Below are positions 53,609 through 64,000 of a stretch of DNA of 64,000 nucleotides, one piece after another. How positions within the stretch are numbered: position 1 is the first letter of the stretch; each line of letters opens with the position of its first letter. The notes beneath the pieces were generated by a model, which worked only from the letters and a program-made list of their open reading frames with translations, was not told where the DNA came from and made no database searches. Origin of the DNA: Felis catus (taxonomy: Eukaryota); the NCBI RefSeq assembly GCF_018350175.1, contig NC_058383.1, forward strand, positions 39,060,001-39,124,000, written 5' to 3'. A program made the position numbers and the translations under genes.

Positions 53609-56007
53609 TCAGGCCGTCCCGCAGCGCCCCCGCCGCTCGCGCCGCTGCAGTCTCCGCAGGCGCCTCGTCCACGCATCGCGCCAGGGCAGCACGAGGCTCC
53701 CGCGGGCAGCGCTGAGCCCGGGCCCCCGGCCCCCGACCGCGGTCCCCGGCCCGCCCCCCAGCAGCAGGTAGCGGCGGCCGGGCAACAGGCGCGGGCAGCC
53801 GCAGGCCGCGTCCCGCGCCGGCACCCACAGCGCGCTGCTCCCTCGCCTCGCGCGCTCCTCGCCGCTCCGGAACACTGCAAGCACGGCCACCGGGAAGCGC
53901 GTCCACGAGCCGCGCGCCTCGCCGCGCGCGCCCACCGCCACCTGCACCGCTGAGGGGGGCGGGGGGAGGGCGAGATGGGGCGGGGTCAGGCGGGGCGGAG
54001 CCGGGAGGGGGCGGGCCGCGCGGAGGAGCTCCGGGCGCCCGCGGTGTGGGGAGGGGGGCACAGAGAGGGGACGGGGGGGGGGGGTGACAGGGCGGGGCCG
54101 GCGACAGGGGGAGGCCCAGGGAGGGTCAAGGGACGGTGAGAAGGTGACGGCAGGAGGCCTACCGTAGTCTTTCCTGCAGAACTTCTTCAAGCTGATGCGG
54201 TAGCTGCCGCGGGCTGGTTTGCAGTGCACGTCGCAGTCTGGAGGGGGTGTGGAGGCTGGCACAGATCCCTCCCTTCTTACCCCGCCCTTTCCTCCTCCCC
54301 CTCCTTGAACCCCAAGCCCCCTTCCCCCACAGTCATGCCAATCTGGGCCCCTGTTCTGTGTCCACTCACCCTGGGGTTCCACAGAGCTGCTCTCCTCAGT
54401 GGGTCCAGGGACAGGCGTCTCTGCGGACAGGGTGAGAGAGCCGCCTGCATTTGAGGGGGAGGATTCGGAGGGCTCTGGGGACAAGCAGGTAGCAGCGGGG
54501 AGGGGGGGGGTGGGGAGGGGGAGTGTGGAGAACTGGTGTGGTTTCGGCTGAGGTGGCGGAAGCAGGGCAGGGTCACTCACTAACGCAGGGTGCCACGGGA
54601 GAGCGGCTCTGCTGGAAGCCGGGGGCGCAGCGATTGCAGGTGAGGCCCGTGACACCATCCTTGCAGGGACACTGGCCTGTGGTCTGGTTGCAGGTTTTGC
54701 CAGCAGCACCAACAGGGTGACAGTCACATGCTGAGGACAGAGATGGGACGGTCAGAAGCCCATCTGGGGAGGTGGGAACCCAGAGGGTGAGGACGTGCAG
54801 GCAGCCGGCGGCAGGCTCACCCCTGCAAGCGCGGCGGTCACTCAGGGCACGGCCAGGGTCTCGATAGAAGCCCTCCCGGCAGTAGTGGCAGTGGCGGCCG
54901 GCCGTGTTGTGCCGGCAGTTGAGGCAGACCCCGCCACTGCGGCGGCCGGATAGTCGGTACAGCTCCATGTTGAAGCGGCAGCGGCGCGCGTGGCCATTGC
55001 AGGAGCAAGCTGCAGGAAGGGATGGGTCAGGGGCAGGCTGGCCCAGTCCAGGGTCCCCAGGCCGCCCTCCAAGGCCTCACCAAGGCAGGCGTGGGCTTCC
55101 CGGGCCGTGGCCCGCTGCCACGGCCTGTCGCAGTAGAAGGGCTTGCAGCGGCCGCAGTCGGGGCCCTCGGTGCCATGCTGGCAGTCGCAGATTAGGTGGC
55201 CCTGGGTGTCCAGCAGGCACCTTGAGGCATGCCCATTGCACTTGCAGCGCCCGCCCACCTGGAGCTCAGTCGCCGAGTAAGAGTAAGGGACCATGGCCAC
55301 GGAGTCCCTGGTGTCCCCCAGCACGGCAGGCCTTGTGAGCACTATTCGAATGTCTGTGGCAGTCACCCAGTCTTGGAGCACTGGGCTGCTGTCCAGATCC
55401 AGGCCTGGTGGGCTTCCGTCCTGCACGCTGAAGGCCAGAAGGCCACCACCATCGGGCTGGGCCTGGGGCTCCGGGAAGCACAGAGCTTCGGGCCCTGGGC
55501 CTGGTGGGCCATCGGCAGGGACAGGCAGGCGGCCATAGTCCAGGCCACAGCGGGAGGAGAAGAAACCCAGTGGGGCCCAGCTGCGGCCATGGTCCTGTGA
55601 CTTGAGCAGAGCCACCGAGGCAGGGGGCGCAGAGCAGAAGCGCAAGCTCACGAACACCAGCTCAAAAGCCTTGCCCAGAGGCACTGTGAGGGTCACGTTG
55701 AAGGGCGCCTGCGTCAGTGAGTCCGAACGCCAGCACACAGGGCTTGTGGTGCTCCCTGCAGAGGTCAGGAGGGCGGCCGGGTGTGCCCGCCTCGGGTCGG
55801 AGGCATCACAGGCCCGCGTGGCCGGCCGCCCACACGTGCTGGACGCCAGTACCTCGCGGCCCAAGGCGGCGTTCACCAGGCCCGGCACGCAGCCGCGGGG
55901 CGCGCCCCCCTCGTCATGGCAGGGTCGGCGGGCGCCGGCGGCCCCAGGCTCAGAGCGGTCGAAAGCGTGCCCGCGGTCAGCAGCAGCCCCCAGGGCCAGC
56001 CGGGCAT
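53609..56007 (-). CDS. NTN3: Netrin-3, 6 exons; 1-nt deletion at ~55922-55924 in this sequence
   Basis: Exons 56007-55081, 55009-54821, 54730-54581, 54420-54370, 54237-54163 and 53949-53609. Signal peptide [10 protein letters not shown], laminin N-terminal domain, three LE/EGF repeats and NTR domain. Exon 1 is 927 nt but needs 3n+1 nt for the phase-1 junction. Confidence 0.93.
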
Positions 56008-56899
56008 GGCCGGAGTCGCGGTAGATCCGCCGGCCCGCCGGGCCCCACGCTGCTGCCCTCGGGGTGGGGGTGGGGGGCGGAGAGCGAGCCCGGGTCCGAG
56101 GCTCTGCCCGCTGGCCCGCAATGCCAAGCAATCCCGGGCGGCCCCAGCCGAGGCCCAGAGGTGGGAGCAGCCGCGGGCACGCCCCGGGCCAAGCGCAACA
56201 GCGGGGATGCTGGCGCGTCCTCCCGCTGGGCCTGGAGCGATGACAGGAGTCGCCCCCGCTCCCGGCGCCTCCGCCCGCGGAGGCCCCACCCGTCGCCCGC
56301 CGTTGCACTCACCCACAGAGGGCCGGGTCGAGCAGGTCTCCCGGCCTCCCAGGAAGGGCCGAGGGCGGGCGGGGCCTGGGGCGCCCCGGCCGCCGCCTCC
56401 TCCCGGCTCTAGCGACGACGGGCGAGCTGTGCCAGGAGGGGGTGGGGGGCGCAGTAGGCGCAAGCCTGGGCCCGGCCGGGGGCGGGGCTGCTCGGGCCGG
56501 GAAGGAGGGAGGAGAGGGGAGGGGGCCTCGTCGGCAGAGCCGGAATCAGAAGCAGATTCAGACACTGGCGGGGCCAGCGGGGGAGGGGGCTGGGAGGCCC
56601 GCGAGCCGGGGGAGGGGCCGGGGAGCCAGGAATGCGGCTGGCGGGAGGGGTCTGGAGGGGGCCGCTCAGCCACGCAGCCCGTGGGGGACCACCCAGCAGG
56701 GTCCCCGGCCTGCATCCAGGCCCTGACTGCTCCTGGGGCTGTGCCACGTGCTGGGCGGGGGTCTGGCCGCCTCCTCCCTCAGGCCCATCTGGCAGACTGG
56801 GCTCTGGATCTGAAGGCTGGTGCCCCGATGCTCCCCTGGGTCCCTACAGGGAACACTCAGGGCTGGAGGAGCCAAGCAGAACTGGTGGTTATGGGATGT

Positions 56900-58416: not shown

Positions 58417-59313
58417 AGAACCTTCTGGGTGACTAGCTGGCCACGGTGGGGAGACGTGCCCAGGCCCAACATGCAGGTTCCACAGAGCCTGAGACAAGCT
58501 TCCAGGGAGCCCCTGGCTGAGTGCGCTTCAAGACTCCTGGCAAGAGGGAAGAAAGGAAATCAGGGAGCAGGCTCCCCTCCAGCTTCGGGCCAGCCTGTGC
58601 AGGCTTTGTCTGCAGCCCAGCTTCCTCCTGAGTCGGGCGAGGGGCTGCAGAACATCTGGTGGTTTCTGGTGTGGGTGGAAAGAGGCCCCCAGGGCTCAGC
58701 CTGCTGCCAGTGTTCATCCCTGTTAGCAAGCCGGGAGTTGCGGGCCCAGAGGGCGGCGGTACCACCAGCTCCCTGGGGAGGAGGCTGCAGGCAGCCCCAC
58801 CTCTTCCCTGCAATGACCACCCCCCTCCCCCCCCCCCCCCCCCCCCCCGCCTGCACAAATTCTCTTCTGGCCCCTAGGATGGCCCTGGCAGATGGCCTGA
58901 TGAGAGTTAAGCCCAGCCCCCAGTGCAGGCTCAATGGCTCCGGAGGGCTGGCCGACCTGTCCCCAGCCTGTCACACCTTCTCAGCCGGTCCTGCCCCATT
59001 CTGGCACCTTAGAAGAAGCTCCGCCTCCCTGCCCCCCCCCCCCCCCCGGATCTTCTCAGGCCACTACAGTCCTCCCATCCCCACCGCACGGTCCCCCGCC
59101 CCCACCCTGTCGGAGTGACAGCTGCTGGCTTTGGGGCAGGCAGGGAACCCATCTGGGGGAGAAGGGGCCCAGGGGGCCAGATGTCCCAGGCCTCAGGGGG
59201 CTGGGGTCTCTCCCTTAAAAGGCCAACTGATCTAACACTCCCGGCCTAGCCCAGGACCTACTGTCCCCTCCAGACCTTTGCAAGCCACAACTCGTTCACA
59301 CATAGCACAAACA

Positions 59314-59319
59314 TTTATT
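59314..59319 (-). terminator. AATAAA polyadenylation signal for the TMEM100/PIRT-like gene
   Basis: ~445 nt after the stop; followed by GU-rich tgtttgtgctatgtgtg; embedded in an L2-like 3' end motif. Confidence 0.55.
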
Positions 59320-59762
59320 GAGCGTCTATTATGCCGAGAGGGGCTTCCAACCCAGCAGTGAGGACAGACAGCAGGGGGAGGGGCGTACGGCACGCTGCGC
59401 CTCGACCCGGGAGGGCGGCCCCCGCCAAGTCCGTGGCCTTCTTGCACCCTGCATCCCCGGCAGGGCCCCCGTGCCAGGCAGACTCTCTCTGTGGTCGCCA
59501 CCCGCTCTGCACGCCAAGCAGAACACTGAAAAGCAACATTGGGAGGAGGGGGGAGAGGCGAGAGGGGAGAGCACAGGGAAATGTCTCGTAGCTCGCACGC
59601 CCTTGGCCTCCTAAGGGCTTGGGAAGAAACGGTCGAGGGAGGGGGCCTCCGCGACCCGCCACCCGCGCGCTGCGCTGCGCGCGCCCAGCCGTGGTGAGGT
59701 CCGGAGGGAGGAGGCGCCCGGCTCGCGGTGACTTCGCTGGGGAGGGGGCCGCCCGCGCGGGC

Positions 59763-60101
59763 TCAGGACGTCCCCGGCTCCCGCTGCCCCGCGCGCCCGG
59801 CCCGCCGCCGCCGCCGAGCGTGCCAGCACAGGAAGGCGGCGGCCAGGAGCCCGAGGCCCGCGCCCAGCGCGGCCAGCGCCACGCCCTGCTCCGGGTCCAG
59901 GCGAGGTCCGCGCAGCGAGAAGGTGATGGCTGTGGCAGCGGCGCCGGTCACCAGGGCCACAACGCCGAACGGCAGGACGCAGCGCGGCCAGGAACCCCCC
60001 ACGCCGCCGGTGGCCAAAAGCAGCGCTCGCAGGGCCCCGGGGGGTTCGGGGGACGCGAGGGGCTCGGCAGGGGCCGCGGGTGGGGGCTCGGGTGCGCTCA
60101 T
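59763..60101 (-). CDS. Putative TMEM100/PIRT-family two-transmembrane protein, 112 aa, single coding exon
   Basis: LLLATGGVGGSWPRCVLPFGVVALVTGAAATAITFS...ALAALGAGLGLLAAAFLCWHARRRRR aligns by eye with TMEM100 (LMAATGGTELSCYRCIIPFAVVVFIAGIVVTAVAYS...LLASSALCWKVRQR, from memory). ATG context ggcATG; lies in a CpG island. Confidence 0.72.
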   Translation of the reverse strand: MSAPEPPPAAPAEPLASPEPPGALRALLLATGGVGGSWPRCVLPFGVVALVTGAAATAITFSLRGPRLDPEQGVALAALGAGLGLLAAAFLCWHARRRRRAGRAGQREPGTS

Positions 60102-60169
60102 GCCGCCGACGCGGGGGCCGCGTTCAGGGTGGGTGTGGGAGCCCGCGCAGACCCCACTCCCGTCCTCGA

Positions 60170-60280
60170 CCGCCACGTCAGTGCGGATTGGCCCGGGATG
60201 CGGTGACGCCACCGGGACGCCGAGGAGAGGAGTTCGCTGCCGCCTCCTGGCTTGGCGTTGAATCTGGGTGGGCGGGTGCA
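60170..60280 (-). promoter_or_regulatory. Candidate promoter of the TMEM100-like gene (CRE/E-box-like TGACGTGG, CCAAT box, GC box)
   Basis: ccacgtca at 60173-60180, attgg at 60186-60190, gggcggg at ~60270. Confidence 0.45.
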
Positions 60281-61164
60281 ATCTAGAGGGGGCGCCTACC
60301 CAGACCTTTGCTCTCATCCTTCCAGACGCTACGGGGGTCACCTCCCTGCCCAAGCGCGGGCAGGACAGCCCTCCACAAAGACATCACCAGGACTGGTCCT
60401 GATAGGTGGGTCATGGAGTCCACAACCTTTGGGCACCCATCTGGGCCTGGCCAGGGATCGAGGTGGACTGCACCCCTGCCCTCATGGGGCAAAGGTCCAG
60501 TAGGGAAGGTGCATAATAAACCAAGTGAACTGGTGGATTAAATAATTTTGGTGGAGGCCACTGGTTATGGAAACTAGTTTTCGGGTGGCCAGTGACAGGG
60601 TGGTGGTGGGACTCACCCTGGATATGAAGGGTTCCTCAAGATCAGAGTAACTGGGCATGAGCTCTGGAGACAGTGATGACAGTGGTCAGGAGAGGGGGGT
60701 GGCTGTCCCCAGGCTCCCTATCTCTTGGCTTCCCTTCTCTGTTCCTGCCCTGGGCAGTGGACATTGCTATTCCAGTCCCTAGAGGCCCCTCAGTACAATG
60801 AGGAGTGGTTTAGGTTTCCTACATTGGTCTATCATCTGGTTCCCAGCAGGCCACAAAACCTGGGATTCCATGTTCAAGGTTTCTGGCCTGTGGGACTGCG
60901 GGGGCTTTTATAAGAAGGACTTCCTGCTGCGGCCCAGAGCTATCTCGGGGCTGCTTCAACATCACTCGGTCCTTCCCCCATACCTACTACCCCTCATCGG
61001 CTCTCAGGAAACCAGGGCTTCTCCAGGGGTTTCCTGGGTCTGGATCCCCCTGGGGCAGAGGCTGGTTTTATTCCCTAATTGCTCATCGCTGTCCACACAA
61101 AGGGCCAATGCCCCAGCTCTGAGGATCTTGCTCTGCACAGGTGATCAGTAATGGTTTTTGTTTA

Positions 61165-61349
61165 ATATAATGCTTATTTTTGAGAGACAGAGAAGATGAG
61201 CGGGGGAGGTGCAGAGAGGGGGACAGAGGCTCTGAAGCCGGCTCCATGCTGACAGCAGAGAGCCGGATACTGGCCTTGAACTCACAAACGATGAGATCGT
61301 GACCTGAACCAAAGTCAGATGCTCAACCGACTGACCCACCCAAGCACCC
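61165..61349 (-). mobile_element. Can-SINE
   Basis: Reverse SINE body; TSD-like cagtaa.gg. Confidence 0.85.
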
Positions 61350-62726
61350 TCAGTAAAGGCTTAAAGAACACCAGATTCCCAGGCCTCACCAGGGCCCAGC
61401 ACTGTGTAATCTGTCCTCACCCCCGACCCAGCGGTAATAACCACTGCTGTGGGTGCGCGGGCTCCTTGGGAGCATCCGGGTGTCATCTGAAACTGGCCCC
61501 CACGTGCAGAGGGCAGGGAGAGACTGAAGAAGGAGGCAGGCCACTCCAGCCGGGTGGGTGGCAGGGTCAACAAGCAAACGGGCCTTACCTACAAGACGCG
61601 CCCACCAGAGCTTAGAGGCTGATGTCTCGGGAGGCCCTCAGCGGGCTCAGCCGTGTACCCCGTGCAGGTGTTTAAAGTATCACATCACTACCTCAAGGCT
61701 GTGTCCTCGGAACAGACCCTGGGAGTGACGAGGCAAGTGGAACCCACATTCCGAGGACAGGGGAGGGGGCGAGGAGCCTCCCGCTGCCCAGATCCAGCTC
61801 ACGGGTCAACGGGTGGTCACGTCTCTTCAATTACCTCTCCCAACAACTAACCCCAGAATGACAGTGAGGACAACACTGGGCCCTTGAGAATCTTGCTAAA
61901 AGTCCCACAGCAGCAATTAAGAGTAAGCCCAACCCTGTGACTGGTTTAAACCCAGAGGTCATGACCTTGACCTGTAAGTTGTTTTTTTGTTCCACAAAGC
62001 AAGGATTCCTTCAGCAGGGGAGGCAGGGGGGAGGGTGCCCATGCTGGCCACAGCAACAGCTGTGGGGTTGGTGAGCACAGATGCCACGCGGTGCCCACCC
62101 ACTCTGATATAGGCTTGTGGCTTTTGTGTTTTCCCATGAGCCCAGTACAGTCTAGGGGATTGGAGGGAGGGGTTTCAGGTGTGCTGGGGTCAATGCTGGC
62201 AGAAGTCCCCAGTCCTGCTCGCCTTCAGTGGCCTTTCCCTCCCTTCAGTATGTGTTCTCAGTGAATACACCTGATGCGTCTCGGTGAGCAAAAACACGCA
62301 TCAAGTCCCATCTTAGTGTGATTTCAATATACGTACTTGCTAAAGTAGTGTTAATGTCACACAAGTGGCTTATAGATCTAACGCGAGAAGAAACAGAAGT
62401 ACTACAAAAAGCCCCAGAAAGGCCTCCGGTCTCAGCCTGGGGAAGGCGAAGCCAAGCGGAGGTCTGACTACTCGCTTTAGCTGCTGTGAGAAGGGCCCTG
62501 GGTTCCTCAGGAAGAGCCAGGGGACTGTCCTCAACCACCTGGGAAAGCTGGTTTACCAGGGTGGGTACACCATCTCTGCATTGGAAATCCTCTCAGTCCC
62601 AGTTAACTAGTGGGGGGCAGGGAGTGGTCTCCCAAGAGTCTCAGTGTCCGAACAAGGTCACCCTCATGCCAGGGTCCTGAGGCCTGGGAACGGGGCTCGG
62701 GGGTGGCAGCCGGCCACAGGAAAGGT

Positions 62727-64000
62727 TCAGTCGGCAGGTTCATCTCGAAGGACGGTGAGGAAGCGCTCCCCTCCCTCGCAAAGCAGGCTGTGCACAGCTC
62801 GGCAAAGCGCTAGCCAGTGTGGCCCCTGTGTGCCCACCAGGGGGAGGAGTTCCGCCATCAGGACCTGAGGGGTAACAAAGAGTTAAGATCTCAGGAGGGC
62901 CCGGGCCCTGTCCAGGGAGGGCTCACAGAAGGCCCTGAATTGAGGCAATTCCAGGGCGGGCTTCAGGCGTGTGTTCCCGCCCCTCCCACCTTCTAAAGCT
63001 CTGCCCCTGGGCCAATGCTGTGTCAGCATGCACACAAGCCCAGAAGCCCCATCTTCAGATGGACCGAAGCCCACGGCTCCCCCGTCGCCCAGTCTCCACG
63101 CCCCTACTCCGGAAGTACCTTTTCCAGGTGGATCTGCTGGTCTAGCATGGCCACCCGCAGCCTCAGGGCCTCTAGAGTCTGCAACTCCTGGGTGCTGGAG
63201 TAGAGAAGAAGCTGGGGGCTCCAGATAGGGTCTGTTCCTCCTCCGCAGGGCAGTGAGGCTCCGGGGCGTCTCCCCACAGGCCACGGCCCCAGCTGCTGTC
63301 CCGCCACTGCTGTGAAGGCAGGGGGAGGTGGACTCATGGGGTGGCAGCCAGGGACCTCCTCCCCATCTGCCTCTGGGGGGGGCAGTGCAAAGTCAAAGGT
63401 TTGCCTCCTAGATGAAGCCTCGTTATCCGTGAAAAATCACCTCTAGTGACACAAAGCAAGCCAGGGGCCGGTATGTCTCTGCTTCTCACACGCCACCCTC
63501 AGTGACTAGGAAAATAAGCTGACTGTTCGCAGAGCCAGGGCCCGTCAGGGGAGGGGCGCGGGGGGGGGGGGGGGCAGGTCTGGCTGGTCCCGTGGGACAG
63601 TTCAGTGGGGGGGGGGGGGGGGGGGGGGGCTCCAGAAAGGACCTGTCCTGAGTGTCCTTGCTCCTGAGCAGCTGTTAATGGTGCCTTTTGGCTCTAGGAC
63701 TTCGACCACTGACAAGACTTCAGCACATACTGAGGGGTGTGTGTGTCGGTGGGGAGGGGGTCTCACCTGCACGCAGCTCCTGCAGCCTGTGGAGACACTG
63801 CTCCGTGATGGCCTGCAGCCCCTCCAGGGTAAGCAGGCAGCGGTACTCCTGCATGCAGTCAGCAGGGTCTATGTAAAAGTCAAGGGAGAGCATAGGTCAG
63901 GTCCACACCAGTCCCAAGCCCTCCCTGGCCCAAGACACGCAGCAGGGCCCACTGACCTGCTGAGAGCACTTCCTCCATTCGCCGTCTCAGCAGCGAACAG
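62727..64000 (-). CDS. TEDC2: Tubulin epsilon and delta complex protein 2 (C16orf59), last four coding exons (partial gene)
   Basis: Exons (>64000)-63957, 63868-63767, 63309-63119 and 62864-62727. Peptides MQEYRCLLTLEGLQA, SPQLLLYSSTQELQTL..LRVAMLDQQIHLEKVLMAELLPLV and WLALCRAVHSLLCEGG; syntenic with NTN3. Confidence 0.88.

Follow-up and report, generated by a model that had tools for sequence, protein, structure and literature searches.

The minus-strand open reading frame (ORF) of 112 codons located between TEDC2 and NTN3 in the window, i.e., the whole 64,000-nucleotide stretch of Felis catus DNA that was analysed, appears to be a genuine single-exon protein-coding gene and the mammalian representative of a vertebrate-wide TMEM100 paralogue, here called TMEM100-like, a reading to which we assign a probability of about 0.8. 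Profile searches and trees placed the predicted protein in the TMEM100 family, within a clade distinct from TMEM100 proper. It is a conserved but uncharacterised member of this family, known so far only through automatic names. The link to PIRT and the function proposed in the initial annotation were not supported by the analysis.

The coding sequence, 112 codons followed by TGA in a single exon, occupies positions 59763-60101, with the ATG at 60101 and the stop codon at 59765-59763, and is uninterrupted. Its assignment draws on the ORF itself, the match to the Pfam family PF16311, mammalian conservation and identity to L001, a ruminant-like locus. The initial annotation was silent on the strand, which is the minus strand. 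All the motifs that it had listed for an intact 112-residue frame were found in the sequence, namely a Pro/Ala-rich N-terminus, the block ATGG-x4-W-x-RC-x2-PF at residues 30-45, two hydrophobic helices appearing as hydropathy peaks centred near residues 50 and 83, and LCW followed by HARRRRR. The family signature A-T-G-G ... S-W-x-R-C ... P-F-G (residues 30-46, positions 59964-60014, minus strand), defined by invariant columns and by the alignment with TMEM100, is located at the predicted cytosolic entry of helix 1. Structure prediction with AlphaFold2 on an alignment of 27 mammalian sequences returned a short helix at residues 22-30 and two long helices at residues 42-64 and 70-105, with a mean pLDDT of only 60. 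Combined with the hydropathy profile, these data suggest a first transmembrane helix at residues 42-64 (59910-59978) and a second one at residues 70-93 (59823-59894), which ends with an invariant C-W pair. Residues 94-112 (59766-59822) make up a putative polybasic juxtamembrane tail that aligns with the basic tail of TMEM100 and consists of an Arg-rich run in every mammalian orthologue, while being Lys/Arg-rich in other vertebrates. Throughout the TMEM100-like clade residues T31, G32, G33, S37, W38, R40, C41, F45 and G46 were invariant, as were C92 and W93. Glycine, alanine, arginine and proline together account for 56% of the mammalian protein.

The predicted protein matched the Pfam TMEM100 family (PF16311) with an E-value of 9.1e-18 and a score of 64.6 bits, the curated gathering cut-off being 34 bits, over profile positions 42-117 of 133. 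Among 5.8 billion proteins, a word-indexed search identified 26 further mammalian homologues, 57-94% identical to the window protein. The alignment of these 26 sequences with the window protein showed an invariant M1 and exclusively in-frame insertions and deletions, while the in-frame sequence 5' of the methionine was not conserved. The same R-E-P-G-x-P terminal region was present in all but a few of the sequences, with P0011, P0013, P0018 and P0027 continuing beyond it. Frame-shifted or truncated mammalian versions were also observed (P0078, P0083, P0080, P0089, P0027, P0103 and P0107), each on single contigs, and might be due either to assembly errors in very GC-rich DNA or to lineage-specific loss.

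When 1.84 billion cluster representatives were scanned in full by HMMER with the mammalian profile, 68 family members were retrieved. All 23 members of the clade matched PF16311, and the hhalign comparison of the mammalian alignment with the TMEM100 clade returned a probability of 98.5% and an E-value of 3.3e-15, with the ATGG / RC / PFG block and the C-W-basic tail appearing as invariant columns aligned with TMEM100. The 1338-residue protein P0051, with 18 short matched stretches and scattered pieces of Pfam families unrelated to TMEM100 (TOM6, phage G protein and EF-Tu), was chimeric or artificial in appearance and did not resemble a family member.

Two maximum-likelihood trees separated TMEM100 proper, carrying S-C-Y-R-C, from all the other sequences with support values of 99/99 and 100/100. 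The window gene fell outside the TMEM100 clade in these trees and is thus not an orthologue of TMEM100 proper. The mammalian sequences formed one group (100/99-100) that joined quail, gecko and tortoise at 97-98/100, and the clade around mammals and sauropsids also held elephant shark, bichir and two teleost groups, all sharing S-W-x-R-C. The mammalian stem branch was very long, with 1.27 changes per site and a skewed composition, and an AU test, which asked only whether mammals can sit at the family base, did not reject a position there, between the two clades (p 0.22). The loop is longer by two residues (G-P-x-x-D) in both mammals and sauropsids, which also share an E-P-G tail. The probable orthology of the sauropsid genes with the mammalian one relies on the free tree, the longer loop, the E-P-G tail and the synteny. 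Both paralogues were found in one species, Anabas testudineus, and named entries for TMEM100 proper exist for teleosts, Amia, birds, crocodilians, turtles and tuatara. The presence of both genes in a single species and the breadth of the clade therefore indicate an old duplication, which dates back to bony vertebrates or further and, provided that elephant shark is correctly placed, would go back to jawed vertebrates. The proposal of an ancient paralogue made in the initial annotation was correct as far as an old, vertebrate-wide clade is concerned, with both genes present in Anabas, but the partner is TMEM100 and not PIRT. We take the paralogy between 16p13.3 and chromosome 17 to be plausible, with TMEM100 again as the partner in this case instead of PIRT.

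The comparison with TMEM100 itself returned about 42% identity over 72 aligned profile columns within the same Pfam family. The two proteins share the ATGG...S-x-x-RC...PFG signature, two helices joined by a short loop, the C-W pair ending helix 2 and a basic tail ending near R-R-E, and both genes have a single coding exon. However, the window protein belongs to a separate clade (99-100% support), carries W in place of C within the signature (S-W-x-R-C) and is devoid of the long S-Q-T-A-L-V...F ending of TMEM100, while its gene, unlike TMEM100, adjoins TEDC2 and NTN3. Non-mammalian members of the TMEM100-like clade showed a Met-Gly-Cys start and an E-Q-(G/C)-x-L end and were not GC-skewed; in placental mammals both ancestral ends have been lost and the terminus occurs about 7 residues earlier. 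Many TMEM100 proper proteins exhibited a precomputed Pfam match to Neurensin (PF14927) besides PF16311, a hint that neurensins, rather than PIRT, may be distant relatives of the TMEM100 family.

The location of the gene between TEDC2 and NTN3, as initially proposed, was confirmed by the Pfam domains of both flanking genes. The last coding exon of TEDC2, the upstream neighbour, spans positions 62727-62858 on the minus strand, with its stop at 62727, and matched PF15764 (DUF4693) at profile positions 242-285 of 285 with an E-value of 7e-19; earlier TEDC2 exons were located at 63107-63337 and 63723-63893. On the downstream side, an NTN3 exon at 54845-56308 (minus strand) encodes the laminin N-terminal domain (PF00055 Laminin_N, E 2.6e-38) and a laminin EGF domain, and the NTR module of NTN3 lies within 53612-54727. 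TEDC2, the 112-residue ORF and NTN3 are all on the minus strand, with the ORF 2.6 kb downstream of the TEDC2 stop.

We take CCNF, TEDC2 and NTN3 to be neighbours in human as well. Two fused gene models from other vertebrates bear on this arrangement. The elephant-shrew RefSeq protein XP_006893950.1 (P0043), a homologue of C16orf59 (TEDC2) by name, contains a TEDC2 domain followed by a TMEM100 domain, the latter without the C-W pair and the basic tail. A polypterid model of 747 residues (P0071) consists of a TMEM100 part, 96% identical to a bichir-family protein, followed by an F-box and a cyclin domain corresponding to cyclin F. Both fusions are probably annotation artefacts, and they would support conserved synteny. 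Papers on goat and dog list CCNF, TEDC2 and NTN3 together for this chromosomal region. The polypterid cyclin F fusion and this grouping of CCNF, TEDC2 and NTN3 thus suggest that the gene of the TMEM100-like clade already resided in this neighbourhood when ray-finned fishes originated.

The presence of a CpG island belonging to the gene itself, as previously suggested, was verified. The island spans the exon and about 200 nt upstream (~59500 to ~60300), with a CpG observed/expected ratio of 0.85-0.96 and a GC content of 0.68-0.83, and it has a sharp edge, the ratio decreasing to 0.26 and then to 0.0-0.15 past ~60300. A candidate core promoter was delineated at 60175-60275 on the minus strand, comprising TGACGT (60180-60175), CCAAT (60191-60187), GCGTCA (60209-60204) and a GC box (60275-60270). 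These elements occur 74, 86, 103 and 169 nt before the ATG on the gene's strand, in agreement with the CCAAT/CRE/GC motifs formerly placed 70-170 nt upstream. All four elements except the TGACGT site are conserved in the ruminant-like L001, and the region may act as a promoter. On the opposite side of the gene, a predicted 3' untranslated region (59297-59762, minus strand) showed 69% identity to L001. The AATAAA signal anticipated about 445 nt downstream was indeed present at 59319-59314, beginning 444 nt past the stop codon and with a GT-rich tract (GU in the RNA) behind it, and L001 shows conservation of both the signal and the adjacent sequence. A further block at 59191-59233 (minus strand), 65-105 nt past the predicted poly(A) cleavage site, was near-identical in the window and L001 and could function in downstream processing or in the distal regulation of NTN3.

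Transcription was evaluated on sequencing runs, which offered sparse evidence for it. In two oligo-dT RNA runs from the same species, about 2% of each of which was read, not a single read fell on the gene or on the sequence reaching to the SINE at ~61.2 kb. The gut metatranscriptome X2 covered the gene and the intergenic DNA evenly, thus indicating that its reads derive from host DNA. Run X1 amounts to 162 million letters, a size below that of whole-genome DNA, and is probably RNA. It yielded a contig of 2026 nt extending from 59296 to 61321, which starts 18 nt past the AATAAA, with almost nothing further downstream, so that its start at 59296 looks like an RNA 3' end. In the upstream direction the contig reaches the SINE, 1.2 kb beyond the ATG, and the next contig begins at 61294, toward TEDC2. 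Thirteen further small runs (five studies, including that of X1) contained 74-88% of the sampled words. The SINE itself (61170-61400), a carnivore-type tRNA-derived element in the TEDC2 3' region, accumulated thousands of multi-mapping reads and contig breaks in all four runs, and it identifies the species of the window as a carnivore.

These profiles leave room for a second interpretation, in which the ORF is coding but resides on long TEDC2 transcripts, either read-through products or ones with an extended 3' UTR, its translation being rare or restricted to this bicistronic RNA, and does not constitute an independent gene. TEDC2 is on the same strand with its stop 2.6 kb upstream, and canonical poly(A) signals in the interval from this stop to 59319 are limited to those at 61166 and 61072. 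The X1 contig is unbroken from 59296 to 61321, where it overlaps the contig starting at 61294; however, contigs merge overlapping transcripts, and continuity does not amount to one molecule. Similarly, the elephant-shrew RefSeq model joins TEDC2 and the TMEM100-like ORF, but such a fusion must read past the TEDC2 stop, and the polypterid gene adjoins cyclin F instead of following TEDC2. Moreover, the ORF lies at the centre of a CpG island with sharp boundaries, and conserved CCAAT and GC boxes are located 86-169 nt before the ATG. The bounded island and the conserved boxes would favour a promoter of the gene's own, and we regard the dependence on TEDC2 transcripts as unlikely.

An independent gene encoding a TMEM100-like protein was further examined in terms of selection on its coding sequence. 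L001, a locus of goat/sheep type with an ORF of 108 residues, was the sole orthologous locus recovered from the metagenome scan, and all dN/dS values rest on this one pair; a tblastn search of a phage collection gave no match. The ratio between the window and L001 was 0.39 overall, 0.22 for residues 24-93, corresponding to the two-helix core, and 0.74 for the two ends. Changes were distributed over the first, second and third codon positions as 12, 10 and 24, and the synonymous excess in this single comparison was significant by Fisher test both in the core (p 0.0002) and overall (p 0.0017). Only 19 amino-acid changes were observed, versus 27.9 +/- 2.6 under random placement of the same substitutions (P 0.0004). 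Identity to L001 was 87% in the coding sequence, 68% in the 5' flank and 69% in the 3' UTR. As obtained from a single species pair, these data are indicative of purifying selection acting on the two-helix core.

The same results bear on the possibility that the mammalian sequence is a decaying relic, retained as a CpG-island regulatory element or simply through slow decay, without a functional protein. The long mammalian stem has a GC bias, 56% of the protein consists of Gly, Ala, Arg and Pro, and the ancestral Met-Gly-Cys start and E-Q-x-x-L end are gone. Frame-shifted versions occur on some contigs, the elephant-shrew copy has no tail, the two poly(A) RNA samples gave zero reads (at ~2% of each run read), and a curated entry was not found. 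On the other hand, a regulatory element would not preserve the reading frame, which over 27 sequences showed an invariant start, a common stop region and in-frame indels, and all the family-invariant residues are retained. The core dN/dS of 0.22 holds across two mammalian orders and is accompanied by an excess of third-position changes (12, 10, 24). We thus consider a relic decidedly improbable in comparison with a functional TMEM100-like gene.

The initial annotation had proposed a joint TMEM100/PIRT family, with the window gene as its third member, and had suggested a profile search against both. The outcome differed for the two names, as the TMEM100 half was borne out by the 64.6-bit match to PF16311 (cut-off 34) and the hhalign probability of 98.5%, while the PIRT profile (PF15099) was not matched by the window protein at E<=10. 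Among the clade members, PF15099 was touched by 4 of 23 with a best E-value of 0.052, ranking under DUF202, LapA and other unrelated two-helix families. The resemblance to PIRT concerns architecture only, both being small two-helix membrane proteins with a basic C-terminal tail, and occurs without a significant sequence or profile match. When TMEM100 clusters were excluded from a language-model comparison with the ESM Atlas, a PIRT cluster was the nearest named one, with 178 of 256 features in common, which amounts to a lead only; its score of 0.85 is below the bar of 0.9, and agreement with PIRT occurred in just 1 of the 10 best matches. Membership of a PIRT superfamily, with the protein working as a phosphoinositide-binding TRP regulator, would fit the identical architecture of two helices plus basic tail and this nearest Atlas cluster, but the profile results and the sub-threshold Atlas score speak against it, making it a very doubtful proposition. 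As judged from the profiles, the window gene is a second TMEM100-type gene rather than the third of a PIRT/TMEM100 set.

Other frames overlap the ORF in the same stretch of about 80% GC, including frames of 195 and 177 residues on the plus strand and a 196-residue extension of the 112-residue frame, so that the length of the ORF is not beyond chance. Long frames being common here, a chance ORF in GC-rich DNA was contemplated, but it is practically negligible as an explanation, since the significant Pfam match is confined to the 112-residue frame (none was found for the 195-, 177- and 196-residue frames in the Pfam scan), homologues occur in 26 other mammalian sequences and in a vertebrate-wide clade, and the substitution pattern versus L001 is of coding type. 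The Pfam match and the cross-species conservation lift the TMEM100-like ORF above chance at the level of sequence comparison.

Concerning existing records, the earlier statement that no named gene lies at this position has to be amended, as automatic names exist in several species, although neither a paper nor a curated symbol was found. RefSeq and UniProt entries labelled "transmembrane protein 100-like" or "TM100" were retrieved for dog (XP_005622143.1), dingo, Dipodomys (kangaroo rat), Marmota, goat and sheep and, beyond mammals, for quail (A0A8C2U7W9), tortoise, elephant shark, bichir and a teleost (LOC117153126). These entries are orthologues or co-orthologues of the window gene, the mammalian ones having the same start and stop, and none of them carries experimental annotation. 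While the dog and kangaroo-rat proteins are present in RefSeq, several sequence clusters, each occurring on dozens of contigs, had no NCBI or UniProt record, and the case illustrates how very GC-rich single-exon small genes escape annotation. A study or a curated symbol for the TMEM100-like gene was not found in the literature searched, where the sole trace was a chicken locus labelled "TMEM100-like" among the differentially expressed genes tabulated in PMC8088581, matched by label only.

The mammalian branch, with both ends lost, a GC-reshaped sequence and a constrained core, provides a test case for how much of the protein is needed. TMEM100 itself has been studied in vascular development and, through the TRPA1-TRPV1 complex, in pain. 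A conserved sister gene could mean either redundancy or a separate biology relative to TMEM100, and knock-out and expression studies of TMEM100 have apparently been conducted without regard to it.

As for the mode of action, the TMEM100-like protein would form a helical hairpin in the membrane with both termini in the cytosol, a topology suggested by the positive-inside rule and by the acylation-type Met-Gly-Cys start of the non-mammalian orthologues. The Arg-rich tail would be cytosolic by its net charge pattern and the N-terminus by the geometry of the hairpin, while C41 and C92, both invariant, would be placed at the inner leaflet as candidate palmitoylation sites. Our best guess, made by analogy with TMEM100, is that the protein may act as a small membrane adaptor whose basic tail engages acidic lipids of the inner leaflet, a membrane protein as its partner, or both; a role with TRP channels or lipids is something that we only infer. 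The mammalian branch has lost the N-terminal Met-Gly-Cys and the C-terminal E-Q-x-x-L and has become enriched in Gly, Ala, Arg and Pro in a very GC-rich region. More speculatively, placental mammals might possess a second functional TMEM100-type adaptor, expressed from its own CpG-island promoter between TEDC2 and NTN3 and absent from the curated catalogues of the best-studied species, which would tune TRP-channel or ALK1-type receptor complexes through its Arg-rich tail in some tissue; we put this forward as a tentative suggestion, and a rather doubtful one. According to PMC7081373, citing Weng et al. 2015, a C-terminal KRR triplet governs the effect of TMEM100 on the TRPA1-TRPV1 complex. The matching position is occupied by R-R-E in most mammals, by R-Q-E or R-E-E in sauropsids and by K-K-E in fish. 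The window species and its nearest relative carry Q-R-E, and the middle R of the triplet corresponds to Q in the window species.
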